From the sequence record PQ390715.1: 64,000 nt of DNA. One strand, 5' to 3'. Position numbers and translations under genes: made by a program. The notes under the pieces are model-generated. The model had not been told where the DNA came from, did no database searches, and was given only the letters and a program-made list of their open reading frames with translations. Positions 6,612-36,120 of the stretch are shown here, piece after piece (the stretch's first letter is position 1; each line of letters opens with the position of its first letter).

Positions 6612-7299
6612 GTAAAATATAGTATTGTTCTACACGTTCAATCCACATATTGACTGCATCTTTGAAGTCTTGACCTTCTATGACAAACTCTTGATATTGT
6701 AGATTGTTAGGATCTTTTCTTACACAGATGAAAATCACACCACGTTCTATATTAGTACCAAACATTTGATTATGGGCTAATGCATATGCTGCAATTTGCA
6801 TACGATAATTTTCGATTTGTCCCCACTTCTTAACTTTACGGGAATTTTTATAATCCATAATGGTTGGGATTCCATCATGAACACCTACTAAATCAGTTGT
6901 TCCGGCCCATAAACCTTCATAGTACAATGGGACTTCCTGTCCCCATACTTCATTAATTCTAGGCCATGCTTCTTGCTGAATTTTGTCAGCCATTCTACGT
7001 GCAAGAACTCGAATTGGCATACCGCCTTCATGGTCTGGCTTTCCTTCCAATCTAAATTCCAAGTTCTCATGCATAAAAGTACCAACTGTACATGCTTCTA
7101 ATGTAATCTCATTAGCCTTTTCTTCACCAACAAATTCTCTCCATTTCTTTAAACCTTCGTCATTCGAGGTCGCACTTAGAATTGTTGTTACTGACGGCAG
7201 ATTACCTGTTGGAGTTGAATAAAGGCGACCTTCTGGGCCGCCTTCAATTCTATTGTAACCAACATATGTATATCTGCTAACAATTGGTGGTGTGTACAT
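6580..7299 (-). CDS. PD-(D/E)XK exonuclease (Cas4/MGME1-like phage family)
   Basis: LPSVTTILS, GTFMHENLE, AGTTDLV, IMDYKNS, YRMQIAAY motifs. Confidence 0.88.
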   Translation of the reverse strand: MYTPPIVSRYTYVGYNRIEGGPEGRLYSTPTGNLPSVTTILSATSNDEGLKKWREFVGEEKANEITLEACTVGTFMHENLEFRLEGKPDHEGGMPIRVLARRMADKIQQEAWPRINEVWGQEVPLYYEGLWAGTTDLVGVHDGIPTIMDYKNSRKVKKWGQIENYRMQIAAYALAHNQMFGTNIERGVIFICVRKDPNNLQYQEFVIEGQDFKDAVNMWIERVEQYYILRGEIESNGAA

Positions 7300-7338
7300 C
7301 CGTGTACTCCTAATTATAGCATTATATTTTAATTTGTC

Positions 7339-7674
7339 TCAGTTTTTTTGTTTATTTGCTGTCACAGCAGCTTTTGTGGCCCAATCTTCAACTTGCTCTT
7401 CAGAATCTTGCTCGACTTCTTCTGAACCTTCTGCTGAATTTCCTGCAAAAGTTACAACATCAGAATTAGCATCCTGTACAAAAGGAAGGGAATTCAAAAT
7501 GTCCATCATTACATTGTATGGAACATCGATGTTGGTTCTCTTTTTAATTTCAGAAATCAAAGATTGAACATTTACTTCTTCTCGACCCGTGGACACTAAA
7601 GACAACGCAATAGTAGTAATCATATTGCGTATATCTTTACCAGGAGCCTCTTCAGTAAGATCACGAAATCTCAT
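7339..7674 (-). CDS. Hypothetical, probable internal head protein
   Basis: N-terminal MRFRDLTEE resembles a prohead-protease propeptide. Confidence 0.6.
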   Translation of the reverse strand: MRFRDLTEEAPGKDIRNMITTIALSLVSTGREEVNVQSLISEIKKRTNIDVPYNVMMDILNSLPFVQDANSDVVTFAGNSAEGSEEVEQDSEEQVEDWATKAAVTANKQKN

Positions 7675-7690
7675 GTAGAATTGTCCTTAA

Positions 7691-8347
7691 TTATTTTTTA
7701 ACGTATCCTAGAACACGTTTAACTTTCTTTTCATTCTCAGAAAGCCATGTTTTCATTTCTTCTTTTGAACTAAAGTATTTAGTACCCACAGTTCCGCGAA
7801 TACTTTCCATTTTTACACCAACTTTACTTGGTTTAACAGATTCTTTCATTTCACGTTCAGTTGGTACTGGCTCAGAGATAATGTCTTCTTCAAAGTCTGC
7901 GTCTGCATCCATATCAAAAGTTGGGGTATCTGCTGCAATATCAATATCAACATCTTCACTTCCAATATCAGAAACATCTGGACCGTCAGTGATATCACCA
8001 GTTAGTTTAAGTGTTTCAGTACTGATTTTGTCTTTTACATCCATTAAGGTAGTAACTGCATGTTGTAGTAGATGGCGAACATTATCACTAAAATTTTGTG
8101 CAGCATCTAGACCTTGCTCGGCTTTAATACGGTCAAGTAGTGGGCCTAGTACGTCAACACCCATGTTGTTAATAACCTCAGATTGACGTTGGAGTTTATC
8201 CACAATCTCACCTTTTACTGAAAGAACAATTTCTGCTTTTTCAATATTAGATTCATTTAGTTGAATAAACTTCATAGCTTCTGCACGAGAAGCTGCTTCC
8301 ATTAGTTTTTTATATTTTGACATTTGTATTTCCTTATAAAATATCAC
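7691..8347 (-). CDS. Hypothetical, probable virion (head) protein
   Basis: LNES/MKES/KMES motifs and an acidic linker. Confidence 0.6.
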   Translation of the reverse strand: MIFYKEIQMSKYKKLMEAASRAEAMKFIQLNESNIEKAEIVLSVKGEIVDKLQRQSEVINNMGVDVLGPLLDRIKAEQGLDAAQNFSDNVRHLLQHAVTTLMDVKDKISTETLKLTGDITDGPDVSDIGSEDVDIDIAADTPTFDMDADADFEEDIISEPVPTEREMKESVKPSKVGVKMESIRGTVGTKYFSSKEEMKTWLSENEKKVKRVLGYVKK

Positions 8348-8355
8348 TCATTTAT

Positions 8356-9027
8356 TTACTTTATATAACCTTCGCCTTTTAGAAAGTTTAATACACGCTC
8401 TTTTAATTTATACGCTTCAGCTTTCTTTTCTGCAATAATTATATCTAAATCTTTTGCTTCATCATACTTCGATTCATTAAGTACGCGTTGACGTTTCTGG
8501 GCTGCTTTCAATGCTTCACTAATCACATTCGTGTATTGAAGACCCGAACTGATTATACCAAGTACTTTTGCATCTGTCAACATTCTTCCTTCATTGAGAA
8601 GATTAACTAATGTAAGTGCTGCTTCATACATCATAATATTATTCATGATAATTTGTGAACTATGATTACACTTAATGCTATAAACTTTAGTAGATTTAGT
8701 ACCTTGTACTTTTTCTTCCACTAAACTCCAATTAGTTTTTGGTTTAAGAGGTGCTTGTGATGGTCGTGGCGAAGGTACTGGTGAATTCCCTGATAAATGT
8801 TCATTATACGGAGAATTGTATTGAACCATATGTGGATGTTGTGGTTCACCATAATCCATACCTGCTTCATTTAATGAAGTTAAAATAGAAGCCATAGCAC
8901 CGATATCACCACCAGTTTTATATGGAACCCCCGATGCGTTATGTGTTTCACCAGCTTCAATGTCATTCAATCCACTTAACAAATCAGCCATCTGATTAAC
9001 TGATTGTTGATCATATTCGTAATTCAT
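8356..9027 (-). CDS. Hypothetical, probable virion (head) protein
   Basis: LNEA/LNEG/LNES motifs; part of a coupled gene run. Confidence 0.6.
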   Translation of the reverse strand: MNYEYDQQSVNQMADLLSGLNDIEAGETHNASGVPYKTGGDIGAMASILTSLNEAGMDYGEPQHPHMVQYNSPYNEHLSGNSPVPSPRPSQAPLKPKTNWSLVEEKVQGTKSTKVYSIKCNHSSQIIMNNIMMYEAALTLVNLLNEGRMLTDAKVLGIISSGLQYTNVISEALKAAQKRQRVLNESKYDEAKDLDIIIAEKKAEAYKLKERVLNFLKGEGYIK

Positions 9028-11073: not shown

Positions 11074-12594
11074 TCATTTCCTTTGATTTAACCATTGCTT
11101 CATTGCATGAACACGATCAGTACCAGCATGTGTCTGTGGATTCTGTATTTCGTTTTGTGTCGTAGAGTTAGGAGCACTATCAGTATTTAGTGTTACTGTA
11201 TTGTCAGGTTGCACAGATGGTGATTTAGCTGCACCAGAAAGCGAATGACGTAATGTTTGCATAGTGCTGGGTGGTAACGCCATGTTCCCTCCACCAATCT
11301 TAGAAACACCGCTGTGACGGAATCCATTACCTTCGGTTTCCATTTGTTGTACTGTAGTTGCGTGGTCAAGAACTCTCAATGAATCAATATCATATGACAT
11401 ACGCAAACGGGAACCTACTGCACTACTGTTACGTGTTTTTTGGAAATCAAACCATAGTTCGCCAGTTTCTTTTTTTGCTTCAATATAAATTACGTTATCA
11501 GCAGTATAAATTTTTGAAATACCACCAGCAATCTGACTTTGACTTTTCTTATCTTCGTCCATACCACTACGGTTAAACTGAGATGCAGTGAAAACAGTCA
11601 AATCCATTTTGGATGCAAGAGCACGTAATTCTTCTGATACAAATTTATCTTTAGTAAATGTATTGGATTTATCATTTGGTCCAAGACGATTAGAAGTTAA
11701 TAGATCCAAATAGTCCACGCATACATAATCAAGTTTGATTTCCATCTTAATTTGTAATTCACGTAGATAACTTTCAATATCGTCTGTGGTTGTTACAGAT
11801 TCAGGTAAGCGTTTAATACGCAACATACCACTGTTTTTACCTTCAACTTTAACAGCAAATCCAATCTTTTCAGCTTCATTTTTTACGTTACTGAGTTTTG
11901 ATTCAGTCATCATACCATAGATACGAACAGCAACCAACTCTTCAGCTAGTTCAAGTGAAATGTATGCACCATTCATTCCAGCTTTCGCAAAGTTAACTGC
12001 TAAATTTTGCAGTACTACTGATTTACCACCACCTGATGCAGCAGCAAAGATCTCTAACTCTCTACGCCCAAATCCACCGAAAAGTTTGTAATCAAGAGTT
12101 TCCCAACCACTCTTAAATGATCCTTGCATTGTACTGAGTGAGCGGATTGTATCTTCAGGGTTTTCAAAAATATCCAAACCTAACTCATTCTGTACCGTTA
12201 CCAACATTGCTTCTCGGATTAGTTCTTCGATTCCACCATATTTTTTCTGATGGACAAGTTCCATTCCTTTTTCAACGGCTAAAGCTAATGCTTTATGGCG
12301 ACAAAATTCACCACAGGTATCAAGTACTGATTGTTTATGTAATTCTTGAACTTCATATTGATCGTATTGATAACCACCTTTAACTTCAATATCTTTCAAA
12401 GTAGGTGATGAACTATATTTTGCAGCATAATCATGCACGTATTGAATACTTTCATGAAATGTTTTATCAAAATATTCTGGTTTAAGGATATTTTTACAAC
12501 GTACATATAAATCAGGATTACTGAAAATCTGAGATAATAAGTATTGTTGTGCATTAATCCCATATTGTTTCACATCCACTGTGCTTTGAATCAT
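11074..12594 (-). CDS. Replicative DNA helicase (T4 gp41/DnaB-like)
   Basis: Walker A ASGGGKS, YISLEL, VCVDYLDLL, FTASQFNR, KTRNS. Confidence 0.93.
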   Translation of the reverse strand: MIQSTVDVKQYGINAQQYLLSQIFSNPDLYVRCKNILKPEYFDKTFHESIQYVHDYAAKYSSSPTLKDIEVKGGYQYDQYEVQELHKQSVLDTCGEFCRHKALALAVEKGMELVHQKKYGGIEELIREAMLVTVQNELGLDIFENPEDTIRSLSTMQGSFKSGWETLDYKLFGGFGRRELEIFAAASGGGKSVVLQNLAVNFAKAGMNGAYISLELAEELVAVRIYGMMTESKLSNVKNEAEKIGFAVKVEGKNSGMLRIKRLPESVTTTDDIESYLRELQIKMEIKLDYVCVDYLDLLTSNRLGPNDKSNTFTKDKFVSEELRALASKMDLTVFTASQFNRSGMDEDKKSQSQIAGGISKIYTADNVIYIEAKKETGELWFDFQKTRNSSAVGSRLRMSYDIDSLRVLDHATTVQQMETEGNGFRHSGVSKIGGGNMALPPSTMQTLRHSLSGAAKSPSVQPDNTVTLNTDSAPNSTTQNEIQNPQTHAGTDRVHAMKQWLNQRK

Positions 12595-12616
12595 CTATGT
12601 TCCCTCATTATATGTA

Positions 12617-13672
12617 TTACATCCATTTATCCGTTTGAGCTTTAATATAAAATGGCTCATCTACTATACTATCATGTATTAATTGTAAACAAAATAACCT
12701 ACCAAATCGTGCACAAGCTTCTTCAAAGTCTTTGATATGACGTATTGTACTACCTTCTCTTACAGCACCAAAGTCTGGGAAGGAAACACTGAATCCATTT
12801 TCAAGTGCTTGGTCTATAGTTATTAATCCATCTTTATCTCTATCTGGAACAATAACTATTTTTTTACCTTTTTGCTGTGCATCTTTTAATACATCAATCT
12901 GTACGTTTGATAATTTAAAGTTATTAGCAGATACACCACCCATTAATGCTGCGTCTAACGGACCCTCACATACTAAAATTGTTTTTATTCGTTCATCTTT
13001 TAATAAATCATAATTATATAGTATATTAGTACTTACTTGATTTATGAACCTGTATGTACTTCCAGGATCTTTTAATTTATGTCGTGCAGTATAACCAATA
13101 ATTTTACCATTCATGAAATATGGAATAATAAATCTGTCATACATTTTATGTTCTTTATTAGGTGACCAATATAATTCTAAGTCTAACAGATATGGGTTTC
13201 TTTCATTGACATTATGCAAAACACTTATAAATTCTTGTGGAATTTTATCTTCAGGTAAAGAAGCCCATTCCCAAAATGTTTTTGCATTTGATGGCAAATC
13301 ACGTACTGTTACTCGGTCATACAATTTTGATGCAACAGTTTCTTGTGCAGCAAAATCACCGCTGTCAACCATTTCTTTAATATAAAACTTAACTAATTCT
13401 ATTTCTTTATCTTGTGCACCAAAAGAAATGAGCAAAGACTCCATATCTTTGCTCATATATTTTCCTGGTTGCCAACCAGTTTTTAAACTACAGTTAAAGC
13501 AGTTATATGAAACGGAACCATCTGCATTGAACATATGATTACCACGGTGCTTTGTATCCGGCCTTGAATGTCCTCTGAACACACAAGCTGGACAGTTGTG
13601 TTGTGACCATGTACCAATCGCAGGTACTGGATCATTCATAATTTGTGCCATTATGTTTTGTACAGCGTTCAT
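12617..13672 (-). CDS. DNA primase (T4 gp61-like)
   Basis: Zn ribbon CPAC...H...CFNC; TOPRIM VCEGPLDA and PDRDKDG. Confidence 0.9.
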   Translation of the reverse strand: MNAVQNIMAQIMNDPVPAIGTWSQHNCPACVFRGHSRPDTKHRGNHMFNADGSVSYNCFNCSLKTGWQPGKYMSKDMESLLISFGAQDKEIELVKFYIKEMVDSGDFAAQETVASKLYDRVTVRDLPSNAKTFWEWASLPEDKIPQEFISVLHNVNERNPYLLDLELYWSPNKEHKMYDRFIIPYFMNGKIIGYTARHKLKDPGSTYRFINQVSTNILYNYDLLKDERIKTILVCEGPLDAALMGGVSANNFKLSNVQIDVLKDAQQKGKKIVIVPDRDKDGLITIDQALENGFSVSFPDFGAVREGSTIRHIKDFEEACARFGRLFCLQLIHDSIVDEPFYIKAQTDKWM

Positions 13673-14762: not shown

Positions 14763-15116
14763 ATGAATCAATATAACACTATTCCACCATTCATTACTGT
14801 AATCCAGTATGATGGTAAAACGTTTGTTGGTATCATCAAAATCAAAAGCAAACAGTATACAACTCTTTACTGTTTCGATGATATGGATGATTCAATGCAA
14901 GACGAATTGTTAGGTATAGCACACGATTGGTGGTGGCAAAGTAATAGAACCATTCCAGTTTGTCTATTCTTTCAAGAAGAGATGGAGAAATTTGAACCGT
15001 ACACACAGAGATTCGATACACCGTCGGTGAATTTCGTATGTGGTCCAGTAGTTTCTTTAAGCAATTTGCCACAGAAACGCATCAAGCGTCGTAATGTGGC
15101 TCTTAAGAAGAAGTAA
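14763..15116 (+). CDS. Hypothetical protein
   Basis: 117 aa, lone plus-strand gene in a minus-strand block; GGA RBS. Confidence 0.75.
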   Translation: MNQYNTIPPFITVIQYDGKTFVGIIKIKSKQYTTLYCFDDMDDSMQDELLGIAHDWWWQSNRTIPVCLFFQEEMEKFEPYTQRFDTPSVNFVCGPVVSLSNLPQKRIKRRNVALKKK

Positions 15117-15741
15117 GATGTTCAACTAAAGCATTTAGTTGTACAACAATCATTAAGCTATATGCGTAAGCATGTGGCTTTTTGAAATATCGTAATTTAT
15201 TTCCTGCTTGGTCAGTGCCTATAGTACTATAATCCCATATGGTAGCTTTAACTTCGTCCCATGTGTTCATACTTTGGCACTGCCTTTTTCCTGGGCGAAT
15301 CATTGCAATAAACATTGCTAGTTCGTCTATAGATTTAGGCTTCCATACATTTAATAAAGTTACATGTTTTTTAATTTGCGATAGATGTTCTACAATTTCG
15401 GGTTCTAACAATAGATCCCAATTTGGTTCCTGATTCATTAGTTCTTTTAAATGCTCTCTATCACGAACATACATGTAAGCTGACTGTGAAAGAATATCAA
15501 CTTTTTGATACCCTAACCTTTCAGCTTCTTTATATTGTATACTTGCCAATCCAGTGATTGGATCAATAGGTATATTATCAAAATGAACACCACTATTATG
15601 GGGGATTAAACCATCCTCCGTAATTTTTTCAGTACTTCGCACACATGGAAGTTTAGCGATTACGCTTTTACTATCCTTGAAGTCAATGTCAATATCAGTT
15701 CGGGCTTTTCTATAATGTTTAGAATCGGTCGAATCCTGCAT
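15103..15741 (-). CDS. Minimal DnaE-like (C-family DNA polymerase III alpha core) protein
   Basis: TDIDIDF, HNSGVH, LGYQKVDILS, IAMIRPG, FKKPHAYAY align in order with DnaE PDFDVDF, HAGGVV, GLVKFDFLG, ALFRPG, FNKSHSAAY. Confidence 0.85.
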   Translation of the reverse strand: MQDSTDSKHYRKARTDIDIDFKDSKSVIAKLPCVRSTEKITEDGLIPHNSGVHFDNIPIDPITGLASIQYKEAERLGYQKVDILSQSAYMYVRDREHLKELMNQEPNWDLLLEPEIVEHLSQIKKHVTLLNVWKPKSIDELAMFIAMIRPGKRQCQSMNTWDEVKATIWDYSTIGTDQAGNKLRYFKKPHAYAYSLMIVVQLNALVEHLTSS

Positions 15742-16048
15742 TTTTTATTTGCTCCTGTAACTGTTTAACTGTATTAGTCAAAGTTGATATTTGATTCTCT
15801 AATAATCTACAATTTTGTTTTGTCTTTGCCAATTCTTGACTTAAACTGAAAAAGCGTTCTTCGTGTCTTTCTACCAAAGAAATAATTTTTTCAATACGAG
15901 CAGGATCATGAACTTGAAATGTTTTACCATCTAAAGTTATTTCAGTAATAGATCCTTGTCTAAGTAGAGATATTTGTTTTGATTTTTGTTCTTTAGGTAC
16001 AGGTACATACCCTTCTGGTATTTTATTATATATACTTTTTCCATTCAT
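15719..16048 (-). CDS. Hypothetical coiled-coil protein
   Basis: C-terminal heptads (LSQELAKTKQNCRLLENQISTL). Confidence 0.7.
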   Translation of the reverse strand: MNGKSIYNKIPEGYVPVPKEQKSKQISLLRQGSITEITLDGKTFQVHDPARIEKIISLVERHEERFFSLSQELAKTKQNCRLLENQISTLTNTVKQLQEQIKNAGFDRF

Positions 16049-16755
16049 AATCCTGCCTCACATAGCATAATCTTAATTTCATCACAATCCTTTTTGTATT
16101 TTATAGTTTTTATTTCAAAATAACTTGGATCGATGTATTTAAGTATATATTCAATTTCTGAGTTTGATAGTTTTTTAAAAAACTTATTAGTACTTTTTTT
16201 AGGAGCAAGCCAGATAATCCAAGGTGAAATTTTACCACTCTCAATCCATGCAATTGCACGGGCAGAACTTACATTTTCAAAGAAAGTATTCCATTGTACA
16301 TTCAAATTTTCAGCCCATTCAACTAGTGAGATAACACTTCTTGCAATTGCTTCTTTTGGGTGCTCGGCACGAATTGTTTTTAATATCCATTCATCTTTTG
16401 CTTTATATGTACTCCATTCCGTGATTGGTTTGTTATTGATAATCAAGTACTTTACAAACTCGTCCACATTAATAATATCTCTATTATTCAAATAGTATTC
16501 GGCAAAACTATAAAAATCATTAAAGTACTTTGACTTTATAAAAGCAATAAAAGGCTCTACACCTTTTTTAAATGGGAACTTATTCAATTCCATAAATTGC
16601 ATATATATACGAAAAGCCTCCATCATCTGGCGGCTTTGGCGGTCTTCGTATCGGTCACGTTTTATACATTTATGTGTGTTTACAGTTTCTTCACGTTTAA
16701 ATTCACGATCACAAAATCTACAGGTATATACTTTATTACTTGATTTCTTTGCCAT
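16045..16755 (-). CDS. Hypothetical protein with N-terminal zinc finger
   Basis: YTCRFCDREFKREETVNTHKC. Confidence 0.7.
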   Translation of the reverse strand: MAKKSSNKVYTCRFCDREFKREETVNTHKCIKRDRYEDRQSRQMMEAFRIYMQFMELNKFPFKKGVEPFIAFIKSKYFNDFYSFAEYYLNNRDIINVDEFVKYLIINNKPITEWSTYKAKDEWILKTIRAEHPKEAIARSVISLVEWAENLNVQWNTFFENVSSARAIAWIESGKISPWIIWLAPKKSTNKFFKKLSNSEIEYILKYIDPSYFEIKTIKYKKDCDEIKIMLCEAGL

Positions 16756-17581
16756 ATTTTTTACATTCTTCTTTAAACAATTTCATCATAGATTTCTTTT
16801 CATTATCTTGAAAACCATTATTGTCAAGAAATGTCTCAAATGTTTTTTTATCATACTGCAATAGAACAATTTTGTACTCATCTTCATTCATTTGAGTAGA
16901 TATAGTATCAGGTTGTGAGCTTTTAATTAACTCAAATAATTCGTTATTTGCCTTTTTGAAATTCTTAGAAAAGTTTAACCAGTTACGTGGCATTTCTTGT
17001 CCACCAATCATATCATGGACTGAACACATAAGCTGATATACTAATTCTGGATGTTCTTTCATATCCCAAAATCCATCATTAACCATATCATTTAGCATAA
17101 TAAGTTGGTATTTGACAACTTCAGTATCTACTAATGAAACAATTTCGGAACCTGATACGCCAAATTCGACCATTGAGGATATTAATTTTTGTGCGTCATC
17201 TTTTGATTGGACTGCAAATTTAATACGCCAATCATAATCACTATGACAGTACTTAGTTACTGATGAAACATTTGTCCCTGAAGACTTTAATTCAGTAACT
17301 AGTTCAGTCAGTGCTTCTTTACCACCAGATTTCCATTTACCAAATACACTTTCAACTTTACTACTAGGGTAGGTTACTTGTAACGAATCATCTAAAGAGC
17401 TTACCCATCGCAAAACAGTATATGGAGTAAACTCTTTTCGTTCTTTTTCGGTCATGTCATTATAGTACTTATAATCAGCACGGTCAATGTGTTTTAGAAA
17501 TTCAGCAATAGAAAAAGAATGCTGTGTTGGTTTTTCATCATCATCGACCGACTTATTTTTAATATCACTGAAATCAAACAC
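16736..17581 (-). CDS. Possible clamp-loader small subunit (gp62-like) with insertion
   Basis: FL..ID...Y....FTPYTVLRWVSS and LNDMVN..FW....HPEL pattern; location in replication block; weak similarity. Confidence 0.4.
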   Translation of the reverse strand: MFDFSDIKNKSVDDDEKPTQHSFSIAEFLKHIDRADYKYYNDMTEKERKEFTPYTVLRWVSSLDDSLQVTYPSSKVESVFGKWKSGGKEALTELVTELKSSGTNVSSVTKYCHSDYDWRIKFAVQSKDDAQKLISSMVEFGVSGSEIVSLVDTEVVKYQLIMLNDMVNDGFWDMKEHPELVYQLMCSVHDMIGGQEMPRNWLNFSKNFKKANNELFELIKSSQPDTISTQMNEDEYKIVLLQYDKKTFETFLDNNGFQDNEKKSMMKLFKEECKKYGKEIK

Positions 17582-17585
17582 TATT

Positions 17586-18083
17586 TTATACTCCTAGATA
17601 CAAATCTTGAATTTTTTCGTTTTCATCTGCAAAGTACACACATGGTGGATTTTCACCACTATGTAGTGGGACGCATAGTAAATTCTTTTTAGGTAACATT
17701 GGTATCTGCCACTTTGTAGTTAATGCAAATACACGTAGTACTTTGACTGGTTCAAACTTAGGATACATTGAACGGATAGGATTGTAAACAAAAGCTTTTG
17801 GTTCTTTCATGTTAAGAATGTTTTCAATTGTACACATCTCAACCATACCAGTTTCTTCATCACCTAACATAATTTGCCATCCTAGAGGCACTTGAATAAT
17901 CTTTTCACCAATTTGAAGATCAGCACTAATACTATTAAATGATACGGTGTTTAGAATATGTCTAAAATAAAAATCAGATTCACCATTTGGGCTTAGATCC
18001 AAAACACAATACATTTCTTCAGGGATATGTTCTGTTACTAAATCCATGTCAAAAGAATTATTTTCAGGTGTTAATACGTTCAT
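17586..18083 (-). CDS. Hypothetical protein
   Basis: 165 aa ORF two genes downstream of uvsW. Confidence 0.75.
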   Translation of the reverse strand: MNVLTPENNSFDMDLVTEHIPEEMYCVLDLSPNGESDFYFRHILNTVSFNSISADLQIGEKIIQVPLGWQIMLGDEETGMVEMCTIENILNMKEPKAFVYNPIRSMYPKFEPVKVLRVFALTTKWQIPMLPKKNLLCVPLHSGENPPCVYFADENEKIQDLYLGV

Positions 18084-18092
18084 GTCATCTCC

Positions 18093-18521
18093 TTAGTACT
18101 GCGAATCTTCTTCGTCATCATAATATTCTTCATCATCTTGGTCTTCTACCCCATAAAATTCAAGTCCATAAGTTTCACACATCTCTTGAATTTTATCTAC
18201 ATCAGTATCCAGATATGAATCAAAATTACCACTTAGACTTACTACATCAATAAAAGTTTTCGTGTCAGTACTTGCATAGATGATATCATATTTCAATGAT
18301 TCTACTTTAGAATCAATTCGTGTCTGTAATTCATAGATATTAATCCAAGAATCACTATCAATATTACATCTCCATACGTTAGTATCATCCGTTTCTAGCT
18401 CAGGTATATAGTCAAGAGAAGATACCATGTCATCCATAATACCATCATCGTTCAACAATACATCCATAACTTCTAAAGTTTCTTGGTCACAAATAAAAGC
18501 AATACTAGATCTCAATTCCAT
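18093..18521 (-). CDS. Acidic hypothetical protein
   Basis: 142 aa, Asp/Glu-rich; preceded by the promoter motif. Confidence 0.75.
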   Translation of the reverse strand: MELRSSIAFICDQETLEVMDVLLNDDGIMDDMVSSLDYIPELETDDTNVWRCNIDSDSWINIYELQTRIDSKVESLKYDIIYASTDTKTFIDVVSLSGNFDSYLDTDVDKIQEMCETYGLEFYGVEDQDDEEYYDDEEDSQY

Positions 18522-18555: not shown

Positions 18556-18584
18556 ATTATATCACAAACAGCGGGTTTATCCCG
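18556..18584 (-). promoter_or_regulatory. Phage promoter CGGGATA-N16-TATAAT overlapping a hairpin
   Basis: Motif copy whose -35 lies in ACAGCGGG-tttat-CCCGCTGT at the end of uvsW. Confidence 0.7.
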
Positions 18585-20061
18585 CTGTGTTTTCCCAATC
18601 TTTAACATCTATTATACTATGAGGATATTGTGCTTCCTTATAGTAAGCTAAACGTTCTCGTAAATGCTTAGCACTATACTTATTAGAACCACTAATATCA
18701 TATATTTCTACGTGGTCTTTATCTTCTGCTCGGCGTAATCCACGTCCAATTGACTGTATAGTTCTTACAAAACTTTTTCCTGGCTCAATCAATACTACAT
18801 TATATAACCTTGAAATACTAATACCAGTACTGGCAACGCCGTATGTCGCAATAAGTATTTTATTATCAGCCCAACGAATTTCACCATAAGATGATTCTCG
18901 ATCTTTCTTTTTAGTTTCTCCACGAACGAATTCTGATTTGGGAATGCCTAAAAATTCACATAGCAACTCACCTGCTTCAAGTCTATCTACTAAAACTAAA
19001 GTGTTTCCTGATTCAGATAACGCAGATATCAATGACGCTACATATGCCATCCTATCTCTGTCAGTTACTAAGTATTTCAACTCTTCAGCATATGATGCAA
19101 ACTTCATACTACTTTTTAGTTTGATGCAATTCACATTACATGTACTTAGTATTTGTTTATCTTGTAATTCCTTTGCAGTTATTTTAAATATAACATCACC
19201 AACATTACATTTGATTTTCGCGGCAACTACCGGATCTTTAGGAATTGTTCCAGTAAGACCCCAACGTAATGGTACGTTATTCATAACTTTAGAAAGTACT
19301 TGAACTAATGCGTCACCGCCTGCACCTTGACACTCATCAACGATAACACAAACTACTCCATCGATAAAATCATTCACGTCTTGTTCAGTTAATTCAATTT
19401 CACCTTTCTTGGTTTTCTTCCATAGAGAGTTAAATGATTGCCAAGTCGTAATAGTATGTTGGTGACCAAAATCTTTTTGTGAACCATAGAACATGCCAGT
19501 ATCCAACCCACACATAATGTAGTCATCATATGTTTGTTGTACTAAGTCAGTACTTGGTACTATTATAACAGAACGTCCATACTCTTGCACTTTCTTTGAC
19601 AATGCAGCAGTAATGAGAGTTTTACCTGCACCAGTAGCTGCCAATAGCAGTCCGTGTGGATTAGCCAAACATGCATTAACCGCATTAACTTGATGTTCAC
19701 GTAGTTTTATGGATTTACCTTCCATGTGGTGTCCTGCACCGAATACAACATCACTAAAAATATCTTCATCAATGGGGTCAAATTTAAATCCATAATCTAC
19801 CCTATGATCTACTAATTCAATGTCAATCTTAGCTTCATCAAGAATAGGCAATAACTTATCTAACATATGATAATAAGTTGTCCCGCCTAAATTCATAAAC
19901 TGAACTTTACCATCCCAACGTCCAATACGTCCTGCTGGTGTGAACTTTGCATATGGTAACACATATTCAGTTGCACGAATCATCTTTTGTCTAATTGAGG
20001 GATCAAGTCCCTCAAATTTACAATTCACCTCATCCAATAAGGTTAACTTACAAGTTTTCAT
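18577..20061 (-). CDS. uvsW: UvsW-like SF2 DNA helicase
   Basis: AATGAGKT, VIVDECQ, GLTGT, ATYGVASTGISI, QSIGRGLR. Confidence 0.93.
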   Translation of the reverse strand: MKTCKLTLLDEVNCKFEGLDPSIRQKMIRATEYVLPYAKFTPAGRIGRWDGKVQFMNLGGTTYYHMLDKLLPILDEAKIDIELVDHRVDYGFKFDPIDEDIFSDVVFGAGHHMEGKSIKLREHQVNAVNACLANPHGLLLAATGAGKTLITAALSKKVQEYGRSVIIVPSTDLVQQTYDDYIMCGLDTGMFYGSQKDFGHQHTITTWQSFNSLWKKTKKGEIELTEQDVNDFIDGVVCVIVDECQGAGGDALVQVLSKVMNNVPLRWGLTGTIPKDPVVAAKIKCNVGDVIFKITAKELQDKQILSTCNVNCIKLKSSMKFASYAEELKYLVTDRDRMAYVASLISALSESGNTLVLVDRLEAGELLCEFLGIPKSEFVRGETKKKDRESSYGEIRWADNKILIATYGVASTGISISRLYNVVLIEPGKSFVRTIQSIGRGLRRAEDKDHVEIYDISGSNKYSAKHLRERLAYYKEAQYPHSIIDVKDWENTAG

Positions 20062-20076
20062 CCATGATTACCTTTA

Positions 20077-20895
20077 TTAATTAGTTCGAGTATTATATTC
20101 GTACTCAAATGTATATACTAAATCTTTATCACAGTTAGGGTTACTTGCATCTAAAATGTCACTATTAGCAATCATCCATTCAATGTAATTCAATGGAACT
20201 GTACTCATTGGCTCACCTTTGTGTTTACCAAATGGCATGAATTGATAACGCATTGGTGTGTTGCAGAAAGTTACAATTTGCTCACCAATATCACCATTAG
20301 GTTCAATATGTCCACGTTCGATTGCAATTTCAACTAATTTGATTAGAACCTGATAACACATGAACACATCGTCTTTTGCTGCGTGTGCATTAACAGGTCG
20401 ATGAACATCACGATAACATCCAAACTTATACCACAAATAACTTAGAGTTAAGTTTTTAAATTCAATATCTTCTGCGAACATTTTCTTAGCAAGACGAAGG
20501 GTACAAATCCATTTATTTTCATCAAGTAAGTACTGTGAAATTGAGTTACGATATTTATATTCGTTATCTACCATCATTCTACGGTCAAATTGTACATTAT
20601 GACCAACAAAATACTTACGGCATCCCATAAGTGCATCAATGTTATCTAAATCATCTTTATACCCAACACAATTAGCTACATCCTCAGTACTGATAAAGTG
20701 CACAGCAGATGCCTCTGGTGGAATATCTTTCAAGGGTTTGTATCTCAATGTATAGTTATCAATAGTATCAATGTTTTCATGTGAAGTATGTGGATACGAG
20801 ATACTAAATTCAATAATATCATCTTCACTCTCAACCCCAGTAGTTTCAGTATCTAGAACTGCTACATTTGATAAAAACTCATTTAATTTTGTCAT
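20077..20895 (-). CDS. DEDDh 3'-5' exonuclease (ExoX/DnaQ-like)
   Basis: LDTETTG, GHNVQFD, HAAKDD; C-terminal MPFGKHKG...VPLNYIEW domain. Confidence 0.9.
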   Translation of the reverse strand: MTKLNEFLSNVAVLDTETTGVESEDDIIEFSISYPHTSHENIDTIDNYTLRYKPLKDIPPEASAVHFISTEDVANCVGYKDDLDNIDALMGCRKYFVGHNVQFDRRMMVDNEYKYRNSISQYLLDENKWICTLRLAKKMFAEDIEFKNLTLSYLWYKFGCYRDVHRPVNAHAAKDDVFMCYQVLIKLVEIAIERGHIEPNGDIGEQIVTFCNTPMRYQFMPFGKHKGEPMSTVPLNYIEWMIANSDILDASNPNCDKDLVYTFEYEYNTRTN

Positions 20896-33114: not shown

Positions 33115-36100
33115 TTACCAAGTGAAGAATCCATTGTTTACTGACGCAGTACTTTTTTCATGAATACCAATATCCATATCCAAAATACCAAAAATATTCT
33201 CTAATTTTTTAGTTAGAACAATCTCTTCCATTTTTTCAGTATCAAATGGTAGTTCCAAGAACCATTCTGGAAGATACTCGACACAGTCAATTGGATAACC
33301 AACAGCTTTAATTCCCATAGGATTATCTTTTAAGTTACAGACAATTACTTTTGTTCCATCCGTTACTTCTGGTACAGATTTATCATCATAAACTTCACGT
33401 AGACGGTTCCATTGGATACCAGCAAGAACGTGACCAACTTTACACTTACCAGTTAGCTGATATTCAGCCTCTAAATTAGTGTAGTTTTTTACAGTTTTTG
33501 GTGAACCTTTTTCATGTACAGGCATATCCTTAAATACGTCCTTAAACTCACGTACACGCTGTTTTAGCTGTTGTTCACTCTCACCTACCAGTAATGCGAT
33601 TAGAGTCTCTTCTAGGAAGTTCTGGATGTATTTTGGCGTGTCTGAGCGTTTAATTTCAAGACCCATCGCTTTGATTTCACCTGGTTTACCATCAATATCT
33701 TTACGGAACCCATCTTCCCAGTACTTCAGAATTGCATAACGTTTTTTCTTCAAGAATAGGCCACGCGAACCAACCATCTCAAGGTCTGCACCAACAATCT
33801 TACCTTTTTCAATACCAGTGTTGAACATCTCATGCATAAATGATGGGAAAGATTCACCAACTTCTTCACCAATTTTAATATACATATCAACAATCTCTTC
33901 TTTAGATAGATTATATGGAATACCTTGTTCTTTCAGATAATGAGTTACACTAAAGTAAACTGAGTCAGTATCACCATAAATTACTGAACCACCTTGGTGG
34001 TTATATACACCAGTAGTAATTTCATTGATACGACTTGCCATATGTTTGGTCATAGAACGTCCAGTTAATGTTACGGATTGACCTAAACGTTTGTCAAAAA
34101 AACGAGAACCTTTGTTCAATAGTGCACCATATAGACTGTTTAGAAGAATCTTACGAATCTGTTGGTTCTGTTTCCAGAAAGCACTACGTTGTTTGAAGTA
34201 ATCTTTTTCTTCTTTAGGACAGAAAATACGACCATCTTTTAGTACTAATCCGTTTTCTACAATCAACTTAGCAACTTCATCCCACTGTCCTTTACCAATT
34301 TCTTTACGAAGTAAGTATACAGGATCATTATCATGAATATTAGTTCTAAACATTGTACCAGGGGTATAGTTTGATAGTAGTGGTTCAACTTTTTCATAGC
34401 CATTAAACTCCCAACCATCAGTATACATATGTTTGTAGTCAATGACCATTTTTTGCTGTGCTTTACGTTCAGAATACCATTGAGTTAGAATGTCAGGAAT
34501 TACACCAGACTTAGACTTATCAAAAAGTGTTCCGTTTGCACTAAGTACAATAGTACTATCTTCTGCAAAAATAATATCATATAGCTCTTTGCCCGTTGCT
34601 TTAAAAGAACTCCCATCTTCTAAATCAACAATCAATGTTTCTTCTGACTTTTCATGAACCATTGTAAATTCAACAGCAGCAAATAAACCATGCCATGCCG
34701 CAGTCCAATCTGGTTCAAATGATTTAGATTTAGATTTGTTCTTCTGTTCTTGGATTTTAGCTGCAAGATACGCATCGGTGTAATCTTGACGTAATTGACC
34801 AAGAATACATTCAGTACTCATACCCAAAGTACGTAGAACAGTAGGGTAAAGAGAGTTAAAGTCAGTACACCCAAGGTCACTTACAAGTCCTAGTACTGGA
34901 TCTTGTACCCATGCACCTGCTGCTTTTGCACTAATTTTCTCATCTTCATCTTCACCATCTTCACCATAATATTCCATTTCTGGATCAAACTCAAGATCAT
35001 CTTTCGGTGCTTTGTTGAAAACAACTTCACCACGAGTATGTGCTAAGTTGATAATAGCAGTGTCGATTAGTGCTACTGAACCCATTGTTGTACTGATAAG
35101 TACACATTCTTTGTGTGCAAGTCGATTGTGTAGGTTGATATAGTCACATTTAGCATCAATCTTTTTAAGAAGAATACTATCCTGTTTAGAATAACGCAAG
35201 AAAGTAATGTAATCCTCTCTGTAAAGTTTATCCAATGAACCTTCATATGATACTTTATTTTCTTTAGTTACTTTTTCAGCAATATAATCTAGTTTATAAG
35301 ATTGTTCAACTTGACCAGCATGTTTCTTATACAAAGCCAAATAATCAAGATGGACGCGACCTATCAGATCATATGTTTGAACAGTTTTACCAAAGTTGTC
35401 TGCTTCACGGGAATTTGGTTTTTTATTCCATAAACACCAACGAGCAGTTGTTGCTTCATTGAAGATTTTTTTAGTTCGATTGATCATATATGGAATATCA
35501 AAGAATTCACTATTCCATCCTGAAATAACATCAGAATCATCAATTAAACTAAAGAATTCCATAAACATTTCCTTTTCGTCTGTATATAAAATTACAGTAC
35601 TGTTAGGATCGTTTGTTTCTTCATTTAGTTGGCGAACAATATCTTGTGCTTCATAAATTTCCATATCAGCAGGTGGTAAAGTAAGTACATAATCCTTTCC
35701 AGTCCATGATTGATATAGAGAAATAGCGGTTACTCGGTTAAACGGGTCTGATGGTGGAGCATAACCAAATTTCTTATGGAAATCAGTCTCGATATCGAAG
35801 AACACGATGTTCAAATCGGGTGAACCTTTTCCCATATATTCTTTAGCTAATGTTTTAAATGTAATGTTACAATCACTTTCAAAAATACGTAGACCTTCAC
35901 TTTTGTGTTGCTCTACACTTTTATTCATTTGAGCTTGAGTTTGAAACTCAAAATGTTTAGCCATTGTACCATAAACAGTTTTATGTGTTCCTTGTGGGGA
36001 TTCAACATAATATTCATATACTGGTTCTAATTCGCGTAGAATACGTTTACCATTCTTACGTTCAACTACATGAAGAATATCACCAGTACGTTTACGTTCC

Positions 36101-36120
36101 ATATAAGCATCGATATACAT
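33115..36120 (-). CDS. DNA polymerase, family B (T4 gp43-like)
   Basis: FDIET, GWNSEFFD, DFNSLYP, KILLNSLYG, YGDTDS, KKRYA. Confidence 0.97.
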   Translation of the reverse strand: MYIDAYMERKRTGDILHVVERKNGKRILRELEPVYEYYVESPQGTHKTVYGTMAKHFEFQTQAQMNKSVEQHKSEGLRIFESDCNITFKTLAKEYMGKGSPDLNIVFFDIETDFHKKFGYAPPSDPFNRVTAISLYQSWTGKDYVLTLPPADMEIYEAQDIVRQLNEETNDPNSTVILYTDEKEMFMEFFSLIDDSDVISGWNSEFFDIPYMINRTKKIFNEATTARWCLWNKKPNSREADNFGKTVQTYDLIGRVHLDYLALYKKHAGQVEQSYKLDYIAEKVTKENKVSYEGSLDKLYREDYITFLRYSKQDSILLKKIDAKCDYINLHNRLAHKECVLISTTMGSVALIDTAIINLAHTRGEVVFNKAPKDDLEFDPEMEYYGEDGEDEDEKISAKAAGAWVQDPVLGLVSDLGCTDFNSLYPTVLRTLGMSTECILGQLRQDYTDAYLAAKIQEQKNKSKSKSFEPDWTAAWHGLFAAVEFTMVHEKSEETLIVDLEDGSSFKATGKELYDIIFAEDSTIVLSANGTLFDKSKSGVIPDILTQWYSERKAQQKMVIDYKHMYTDGWEFNGYEKVEPLLSNYTPGTMFRTNIHDNDPVYLLRKEIGKGQWDEVAKLIVENGLVLKDGRIFCPKEEKDYFKQRSAFWKQNQQIRKILLNSLYGALLNKGSRFFDKRLGQSVTLTGRSMTKHMASRINEITTGVYNHQGGSVIYGDTDSVYFSVTHYLKEQGIPYNLSKEEIVDMYIKIGEEVGESFPSFMHEMFNTGIEKGKIVGADLEMVGSRGLFLKKKRYAILKYWEDGFRKDIDGKPGEIKAMGLEIKRSDTPKYIQNFLEETLIALLVGESEQQLKQRVREFKDVFKDMPVHEKGSPKTVKNYTNLEAEYQLTGKCKVGHVLAGIQWNRLREVYDDKSVPEVTDGTKVIVCNLKDNPMGIKAVGYPIDCVEYLPEWFLELPFDTEKMEEIVLTKKLENIFGILDMDIGIHEKSTASVNNGFFTW

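Follow-up and report, generated by a model that had tools for sequence, protein, structure and literature searches.

The C-half gene and its motifs

We analysed a stretch of DNA of 64,000 nucleotides (hereafter the window), which corresponds to positions 186001-250000 of Escherichia phage SHEFM2K (PQ390715.1; 100% identical), a 348-kb Asteriusvirus-type (PBECO4/121Q, Rak2-like) jumbo myovirus. A gene on its minus strand, deposited as M2K_0475 with the annotation "DNA polymerase", encodes a protein of 212 amino acids (aa) that matches a PHROG family bearing the same annotation (phrog_11778, E-value 2e-108). We consider it likely that this protein, here termed the C-half, is the C-terminal subunit of a minimal C-family DNA polymerase made of two polypeptides in the T4-related group 2.2 jumbo phages. 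The gene and the codons of its conserved motifs, with the counterparts in the Escherichia coli alpha subunit (DnaE) of DNA polymerase III (Pol III), are as follows:

15103..15741, minus strand: coding sequence of the C-half, 212 aa, the proposed C-terminal (Mg2+- and template-binding) subunit of a split minimal Pol III alpha (open reading frame (ORF), phrog_11778, AlphaFold2 model, Foldseek, omega)
15682..15696, minus strand: codons D16-I-D18-I-D20, strand with the two metal-binding Asp (D401 and D403 of DnaE; D20 corresponds to the non-catalytic D405) (conservation, register with strain MG1655)
15589..15600, minus strand: codons H48-N-S-G51, beta-hairpin (H511-A-G-G in E. coli) (conservation)
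15496..15504, minus strand: codons K80-V-D82 (K553-F-D555), third catalytic carboxylate, last palm strand (conservation; hhalign match of residues 68-149 to DnaE 544-642)
15286..15297, minus strand: codons R149-P-G-K152 (FRPGP loop 638-645 of E. coli) (conservation; weak match of residues 129-162 to the Pfam finger family PF17657)
15172..15186, minus strand: codons F186-K-K-P-H190 (F756-N-K-S-H760 in E. coli) (conservation)

An earlier note on this DNA had described the protein as a miniature C-family polymerase, recognizable by six motifs that contain all three catalytic Asp residues. The motifs are indeed there and in the order given: TDIDIDF begins at residue 15, PHNSGVH at 47, EAERLGYQKVDILS at 72, LSQI at 120, KPKSIDELAMFIAMIRPG at 134 and FKKPHAYAY at 186. 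The strings to which they had been compared occur verbatim in the product of MG1655 dnaE (PDFDVDF at 400, KHAGGVV at 510, VEYAGLVKFDFLG at 546, FQL at 609, QPDCFEDMIALVALFRPG at 624 and FNKSHSAAY at 756). The register between the two proteins is gapless and pairs D16 with D401, D18 with D403, D20 with D405, H48 with H511, K80 with K553, D82 with D555 and H190 with H760, so the three catalytic residues of DnaE (D401, D403 and D555) are all represented, by D16, D18 and D82. In E. coli, K510/H511 touch the primer and the loop 638-645 touches the template overhang (cryo-electron microscopy preprint 10.64898/2026.06.29.735100), and H760 is the steric gate against ribonucleoside triphosphates (PMC8485763; preprint 10.64898/2026.06.29.735100). 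The template-contact elements appear in the C-half as an SQI loop (DnaE 609-613) and an IRPxK loop (DnaE 638-645). According to the assignments made in E. coli structures, the C-half thus keeps elements for metal binding, for the primer terminus, for the template near the junction and for sugar selection.

Conservation and selection

Residue conservation was counted in 238 near-full-length homologues of the C-half. D16, D18 and D82 are each invariant (235/235), in relatives down to ~35% identity, while the non-catalytic D20 is found in 224/235 sequences and replaced by Ser, Glu or Asn in the other 11. The remaining motif residues are nearly as constant: H48 and K80 (234/235 each), G51 (232/235), R149 (234/236), P150 (235/236) and H190 (233/236), with Lys or Arg at position 187 in 234/236; H48, K80, R149, P150 and H190 are all at least 98% conserved. 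A word-indexed search gave 785 homologues, all of ~190-220 aa, and an exhaustive HMMER search yielded 506 clusters when grouped at 50% identity. A codon comparison among six phages, which the earlier note had proposed as a check, gave for the least saturated pair a nonsynonymous rate (dN) of 0.033, a synonymous rate (dS) of 0.91 and a ratio (omega) of 0.037, a sign of strong purifying selection. The earlier note had also named loss of the aspartates and frameshift decay as signs to look for; neither was observed, and the ORF is intact in 6/6 phages. Because the catalytic Asp residues are conserved, omega is low and the reading frames are intact, the C-half is a conserved enzyme-like protein and not a decaying fragment. 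A single deviant sequence was noticed (P0265, 233 aa), in which the first ~110 residues are those of a normal C-half, including DxDxD, H and KxD, and the remainder is unrelated; it probably results from chimeric assembly or from a frameshift.

Predicted structure and reduction relative to DnaE

Our profile search of the PDB with the C-half family matched Pol III alpha as the sole family, in four colinear patches and weakly (E-value 1.2), and hhalign comparison of the same profile with DnaE 544-642 gave an E-value of 0.037. The C-half was modelled by AlphaFold2 with a predicted local distance difference test (pLDDT) score of 92, and the comparison with the DnaE structure suggested earlier was made with Foldseek: each of the top 10 PDB matches is a Pol III alpha structure of either Thermus aquaticus or E. 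coli (best E-value 4e-3; probability 0.99-1.0 in the top six), and only noise follows beyond rank 10. The resemblance of the C-half to Pol III alpha exceeds chance. Its derivation from a C-family (DnaE) catalytic core, as originally proposed, is supported by the motifs, the fold and the fused relatives described below.

Compared with DnaE, the C-half is strongly reduced. Only 26 residues separate the DxD strand from the H48 hairpin, as against 104 in DnaE, so that hardly any thumb is left; the RPG loop and the FxKxH helix are 35 residues apart, versus 115 in DnaE, which amounts to the deletion of an 80-residue index-finger segment. The chain ends at the equivalent of DnaE residue ~782 and lacks the ring and little fingers as well as the beta-binding, HhH, OB and tau-binding regions, and neither the C-half nor the partner protein described below gave a Pfam match to the PHP domain. 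At the other end, the C-half begins 15 residues ahead of the DxD strand and is without the preceding palm strand that bears the GS motif. In E. coli this motif (R362-G363-S364) and its strand lie at most 4 Å from the deoxynucleoside triphosphate (dNTP) (preprint 10.64898/2026.06.29.735100). The absence of the PHP, clamp-binding and OB domains, of the thumb and of most of the fingers agrees with the missing parts listed earlier, but that list omitted the one that matters most, the N-terminal palm half, which bears the GS motif.

A probable partner protein encoded 30 kb away

The ORFs adjacent to the C-half gene (15719-16755), in which the earlier note had suggested looking for the missing parts of DnaE, show no similarity to them; the partner is encoded 30 kb away instead:

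SHEFM2K 170253-170768 (outside the window, 30.3 kb from the C-half gene): N-half, M2K_0434, 172 aa (Pfam PF07733)

The N-half passes the cutoff of PF07733 ("Pol III alpha NTPase domain") with 37.9 bits against the required 23.9 (E-value 1.9e-9). It carries the motif G-L-G-R140-G-S142-S, which corresponds to the dNTP triphosphate contacts R362-G363-S364, and also comprises the palm helices ahead of this strand; across 121 N-half sequences, GRGS shows a conservation of 95% or more. Its terminus (...NEFLKW) has as its counterpart FERFLN (388-393) in DnaE, where PDFDVDF (400-406) follows a few residues on. The distance between the two genes varies from 14.7 kb in CM1 and 30.3 kb in SHEFM2K to ~43 kb in PA5oct-type phages and ~182 kb in Atu_ph07, and in SHEFM2K, Paride, CBB and Atu_ph07 the N-half gene lies 2-4 genes from a gp44-type clamp loader (see also PMC5259590 and PMC6102473). 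The N-half has been noted before as a "truncated" Pol III alpha in CBB (CBB_328, 172 aa; PMC5259590) and in Atu_ph07 (gp316; PMC6102473). Within the window, no Pfam match to Pol III domains was obtained for the ORFs 14763-15116, 15719-16048, 16045-16755, 16736-17581, 17586-18083 and 18093-18521. In the metagenomic contigs L007 and L008 a 200-aa gene that overlaps the start of the C-half gene was considered as an adjacent N-half and rejected, as it is a homolog of the ORF 16045-16755.

Evidence that both halves may form one enzyme

We searched 50,697 phage records with each half by tblastn. The two proteins occur in the same numbers in every genus: Escherichia 34/34, Pseudomonas 11/11, Salmonella 8/8, Erwinia 8/8, Xanthomonas 4/4, Yersinia 4/4 and Cronobacter 2/2 (N-half/C-half). 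With the N-half as query, true DnaE proteins of full length were retrieved as well, from Streptomyces and Bacillus phages.

An exhaustive search revealed natural fusions of the N-half with the C-half, as single chains of 336-376 aa, in two rare metagenomic lineages. The first comprises P0179 (375 aa), P0270 and P0271, which are 375-376 aa long and 78-81% identical to each other; as P0270 and P0271 were assembled independently, the fusion in P0179 is not an assembly artefact. The second is represented by P0259 (336 aa), only ~29% identical to P0179, which reads D-Y-D-I-E in place of DxDxD and has RGSGGAS, a sequence nearer to the GRGSGAGS of DnaE. The ~90 residues by which the phage N-halves are extended at their N terminus are also missing from P0259, so this extension may be dispensable for the core.

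The junction was examined in a single alignment (A3), and two others with many halves and three fusions (A2 and A4) were discarded since MAFFT had misaligned them. In A3 the ends of the N-halves and the starts of the C-halves meet at one linker of ~10 residues in the fused proteins. The N-half ends 0-2 residues past EFLK in 113 of the 121 sequences, and the C-half starts 1-19 residues ahead of DxDxD. The A3 profile of fused and split sequences aligns with DnaE 320-420 without a break across the junction (hhalign probability 96%, E-value 4e-9), and in BLASTP searches P0179 and P0259 match DnaE (E-values 3e-10 and 9e-8, respectively) over a region that spans the junction and the DxD strand. Modelled with AlphaFold (pLDDT 75.5, predicted template modelling score 0.71), the fused chain retrieves from the PDB, as its top 18 matches, C-family polymerases exclusively (Pol III alpha of Thermus, E. 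coli and Mycobacterium tuberculosis, and PolC), with noise thereafter; the best match has an E-value of 1.9e-6, and 330-510 columns are aligned. Two further proteins, P0283 and P0284 (540-551 aa), contain PHP (PF02811) and PF07733 only and are similar to the fused mini-polymerase with E-values of 6e-6 and 9e-4. They may be DnaEs truncated by the ends of their contigs or C-family forms of intermediate size related to it.

In E. coli the large-palm residues 271-393 remain essentially fixed on DNA binding, whereas the following part of the palm with D401/D403 and the small subdomain with D555 move (preprint 10.64898/2026.06.29.735100). The phage split, at the equivalent of DnaE ~393-397, therefore falls at a natural hinge, which may explain why the fold tolerates the cut. 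Together, co-occurrence and natural fusions suggest, albeit indirectly, that the two halves reconstitute one active enzyme.

Genomic neighbourhood

The genes around the C-half gene and the other replication genes of the window discussed here are listed below:

11074-12594, minus strand: DnaB-like helicase (Pfam DnaB_C, E-value 3e-17)
12617-13672, minus strand: primase (PHROG 47 annotation; homology to annotated primases)
14763..15116, plus strand: convergent 117-aa ORF, phrog_11637, possible accessory factor; it and the C-half gene overlap at their 3' ends by 14 nucleotides
15719-16048, minus strand: 109-aa coiled-coil ORF annotated as "virion structural protein", phrog_14909; overlaps the start of the C-half gene by 23 nucleotides
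16045..16755, minus strand: 236-aa ORF, phrog_11058, with an N-terminal C2H2-like CxxC...HxxxC motif (Zn-finger ORF); Pfam zinc-finger matches all below threshold
18577..20061, minus strand: superfamily 2 (SF2, UvsW-type) helicase (Pfam ResIII, DEAD, Helicase_C)
20077..20895, minus strand: DnaQ/Pol III epsilon-like 3'-5' exonuclease, possible proofreading partner (Pfam RNase_T, E-value 7e-15)
33115..36120, minus strand: family-B DNA polymerase, 1001 aa, main replicase (Pfam DNA_pol_B_exo1, E-value 1e-22; DNA_pol_B, E-value 1e-21)

The earlier note had placed the gene in a replication block between primase/helicase and clamp-loader-like genes. The former (11074..13672) are where they were said to be, but on the other side lies the SF2 helicase of the UvsW type, which is probably the gene that had been called "clamp-loader-like"; the actual clamp loader is located outside the window. 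The full B-family replicase that the earlier note had credited to the phage is present, with both exonuclease and polymerase domains recognized by Pfam, and its coexistence with the C-half agrees with the view that the latter is an accessory and not the main polymerase. In the replicase the exonuclease match ends at residue ~280 and the polymerase match begins at ~645, leaving ~360 residues between them without a Pfam assignment. A single-stranded DNA-binding protein (SSB) and UvsX are present according to the deposited annotation.

The block is syntenic in phages of E. coli, Pseudomonas (Paride/PA5oct-type) and Agrobacterium (Atu_ph07), in the order SF2 helicase, small ORFs, Zn-finger ORF, C-half, convergent ORF, one ORF, primase and DnaB, and the micro-synteny with the Zn-finger and convergent ORFs extends to the fused gene and to distant metagenomic lineages. 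The convergent ORF, for which no Pfam match was found, has homologs in the same position in Paride, Atu_ph07 and the metagenomic contigs L006 (beside the fused gene) and L007, and its tail-to-tail pairing with the C-half gene is kept across protein identities of ~25-35%. Homologs of the Zn-finger ORF occur in Paride (E-value 1.5e-37), Atu_ph07 (4e-29) and L007/L008 (4.5e-10); they are located directly upstream of the C-half gene in Paride and in L007/L008, where they overlap its start, and nearby in Atu_ph07. The product of the Zn-finger ORF could be a DNA-binding partner of the mini-polymerase. Between these two genes SHEFM2K has the coiled-coil ORF, for which BLASTP found no counterpart in the blocks of Paride or Atu_ph07; given this and the direct contact of the Zn-finger ORF with the C-half gene in Paride and L007/L008, the coiled-coil ORF seems to have been inserted in the enterobacterial (Rak2-like) phages. 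A few genes upstream of the split C-half gene on L007 (at 7136-8389, plus strand) we noticed a nucleotidyltransferase of the PolyA_pol/CCA-adding type and an RNase H.

Bacterial epsilon docks on alpha by way of the PHP domain of the latter, a domain that the phage mini-alpha does not have. The C-terminal stretch of the DnaQ-like exonuclease (20077-20895) matches QSregVF_b and ExoX-like_C. This protein was noted previously as a homolog of Pol III epsilon (PMC5259590, PMC6102473). A published omics study of PA5oct (PMC7318152) contained nothing usable on expression of the C-half gene or on its product in the virion.

Proposed function and alternative explanations

We propose that the N-half and the C-half bind each other non-covalently to form one nucleotidyltransferase active site of the Pol-beta-like type. 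The complex would add dNTPs to a templated primer by two-metal catalysis and with selectivity for dNTPs. It would be distributive, with a low processivity that is to be expected of an enzyme without thumb, clamp-binding, HhH, OB and PHP domains. As the C-half gene lies in the primosome block and the N-half gene near the clamp loader, the enzyme may act alongside the family-B replicase, at the fork or in repair, as Iyer et al. likewise suggest (PMC7824862); its most likely role would be that of a second polymerase for short patches, engaged either in primer extension at the primosome or in gap filling during repair or recombination-dependent replication.

Several observations weigh against this proposal. 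Foldseek TM scores are modest (0.37-0.56, query-normalised), the C-half stays below the Pfam cutoff (its only match, to PF17657, has 13.5 bits against 22), and PDB searches with sequence information only, either a single sequence or the profile (E-value 1.2), are not significant, so that structure prediction and the fused intermediates were needed to establish the link with DnaE. Moreover, R709, K714 and K715, basic residues of the E. coli index finger in contact with the dNTP, fall within the deleted segment, and the N-half has a Glu aligned with R390; on both counts nucleotide binding may differ from that in E. coli. Residues 1 to ~90 of the N-half have no counterpart in DnaE and were modelled with low confidence. 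The physical association of the halves is putative, and our literature search found no biochemical study of any member of the family. The biological role is the weakest step, as gene neighbourhood is the only guide to the choice between primer extension and repair.

The view that the C-half needs no partner and acts as a nucleotidyltransferase in a new role can draw on the catalytic Asp residues, the steric-gate His and the primer- and template-contact motifs, all of which reside in this one chain, and on the confidence with which the chain folds by itself in the model (pLDDT 92). We nevertheless regard it as very unlikely, and with it the self-contained miniature polymerase of the earlier note: the strand with the GS motif, adjacent to the dNTP in E. 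coli Pol III, is missing from the C-half, and the separate 172-aa protein that carries it co-occurs with the C-half in every genus and is fused to it in two lineages. For the new jobs envisaged at that time (template-independent synthesis, DNA modification or a decoy function) we found no positive evidence, and retention of the contacts to primer and template and of the steric gate favours ordinary templated addition of dNTPs. The same contacts bear on the idea that the two-subunit enzyme is active without a template, as a terminal transferase, a primer-independent initiator, a synthase of a nucleotide signal or a DNA-modifying nucleotidyltransferase. Many enzymes with the Pol-beta fold are template-independent, the phage already encodes PolB, and loss of the thumb, of the duplex-binding HhH and clamp-binding domains and of the basic index-finger residues would fit such an activity. 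However, the residues that contact the primer end (H48), the template (SQI and IRPxK) and the dNTP sugar (H190) are kept and at least 98% conserved, and the genes are located in the primosome block (C-half) and beside the clamp loader (N-half), which makes a non-templated activity improbable, though somewhat less so than a C-half acting on its own.

A catalytically dead remnant or a decoy of the host replisome might be suspected from the fragment-like character of the C-half, which has 18% of the length of DnaE and is without the tau-, beta- and epsilon-binding regions. A remnant is hard to reconcile with an omega of ~0.04, intact ORFs, a catalytic triad conserved in 235/235 sequences while D20 varies, and the 506 clusters; a decoy would be deprived of exactly those regions that bind the host beta, tau and epsilon subunits, and we give this explanation very little credence. 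In cyanobacteria, the classic example of a divided polymerase gene, dnaE consists of two genes far from each other whose products are joined after translation by a split intein. We looked for a similar arrangement in the phage and rejected it: the ends at the break leave no space for intein halves of ~100 aa and ~35 aa, neither half has a Pfam match to Hint or intein domains, and the split site (~393) differs from the cyanobacterial one. The chance that the phage halves are joined in this way seems negligible. A more elaborate version of the two-subunit enzyme, which is speculative and on balance unlikely, although we rate it above the alternatives just discussed, would unite the mini-Pol III alpha, the products of the Zn-finger and convergent ORFs and perhaps the DnaQ-like exonuclease in a hitherto unrecognized accessory polymerase complex that receives primers at the DnaG/DnaB-type primosome and passes them on to the family-B replicase. 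In that case the replisome would be a hybrid of bacterial and archaeo-eukaryotic types, and the enzyme would stand for an irreducible and possibly ancestral C-family core.

Relation to known systems

A "minimal, split Pol III alpha" of group 2.2 jumbo phages was described by Iyer, Anantharaman, Krishnan, Burroughs and Aravind (2021, Viruses 13:63; PMC7824862). The published system agrees with the one studied here in every respect: it belongs to T4-related jumbo phages with a family-B polymerase, an UvsW-type helicase and a gp32-type SSB, and it consists of two distant genes for an N-terminal NTP-binding and a C-terminal Mg2+/template-binding unit, with no other Pol III domains. From this description, which differs in nothing essential, we infer that the C-half is the C-terminal unit of the published system and the same as the exemplar in its Fig. 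3b. In several GenBank records the C-half already bears the name "DNA polymerase", "DNA polymerase III alpha" or "DnaE-like". This split enzyme is thus already known, both from PMC7824862 and from GenBank annotation, and the earlier note is a correct rediscovery, whose important omission was the partner. The natural fusions, the location of the split at a hinge and the conserved micro-synteny (the Zn-finger and convergent ORFs and the placement near primosome and clamp loader) are not mentioned in the portions of PMC7824862, PMC5259590 and PMC6102473 that concern these proteins, and may be regarded as modest additions.

With Pol III alpha/DnaE (E. coli 2HNH, 5FKW; Thermus aquaticus 2HPI, 3E0D, 4IQJ) and PolC (3F2B), which supply all of its structural matches in the PDB, the phage system shares the Pol-beta-like palm and the DxD...D triad, the primer contact of the H511 type, the template-contact loops and the steric-gate helix FxKxH, and the GS motif, which is found in the partner. 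Unlike DnaE, a single chain of 1160 aa, the phage polymerase would comprise ~384 aa in two chains. The cyanobacterial split DnaE is likewise a C-family polymerase encoded by two far-apart genes, but it is a full-length protein, divided at another site and rejoined by protein trans-splicing, whereas the phage halves contain no intein sequences, so that any association between them must be non-covalent.

If two pieces of ~20 kDa indeed reconstitute a polymerase, this would be the smallest functional C-family core (~380 versus 1160 aa), without thumb, PHP domain or clamp binding, and a model for the essentials and the origin of the bacterial replicase fold. It would also represent a rare replisome in which a family-B replicase is paired with a C-family enzyme. 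A functional analogy, and no more than that, is offered by DnaE of Bacillus subtilis, an accessory C-family polymerase that acts beside another main replicase; the phage C-half gene is located near those of the primase and DnaB, although the B. subtilis protein, unlike the phage enzyme, is full-length and retains clamp binding.

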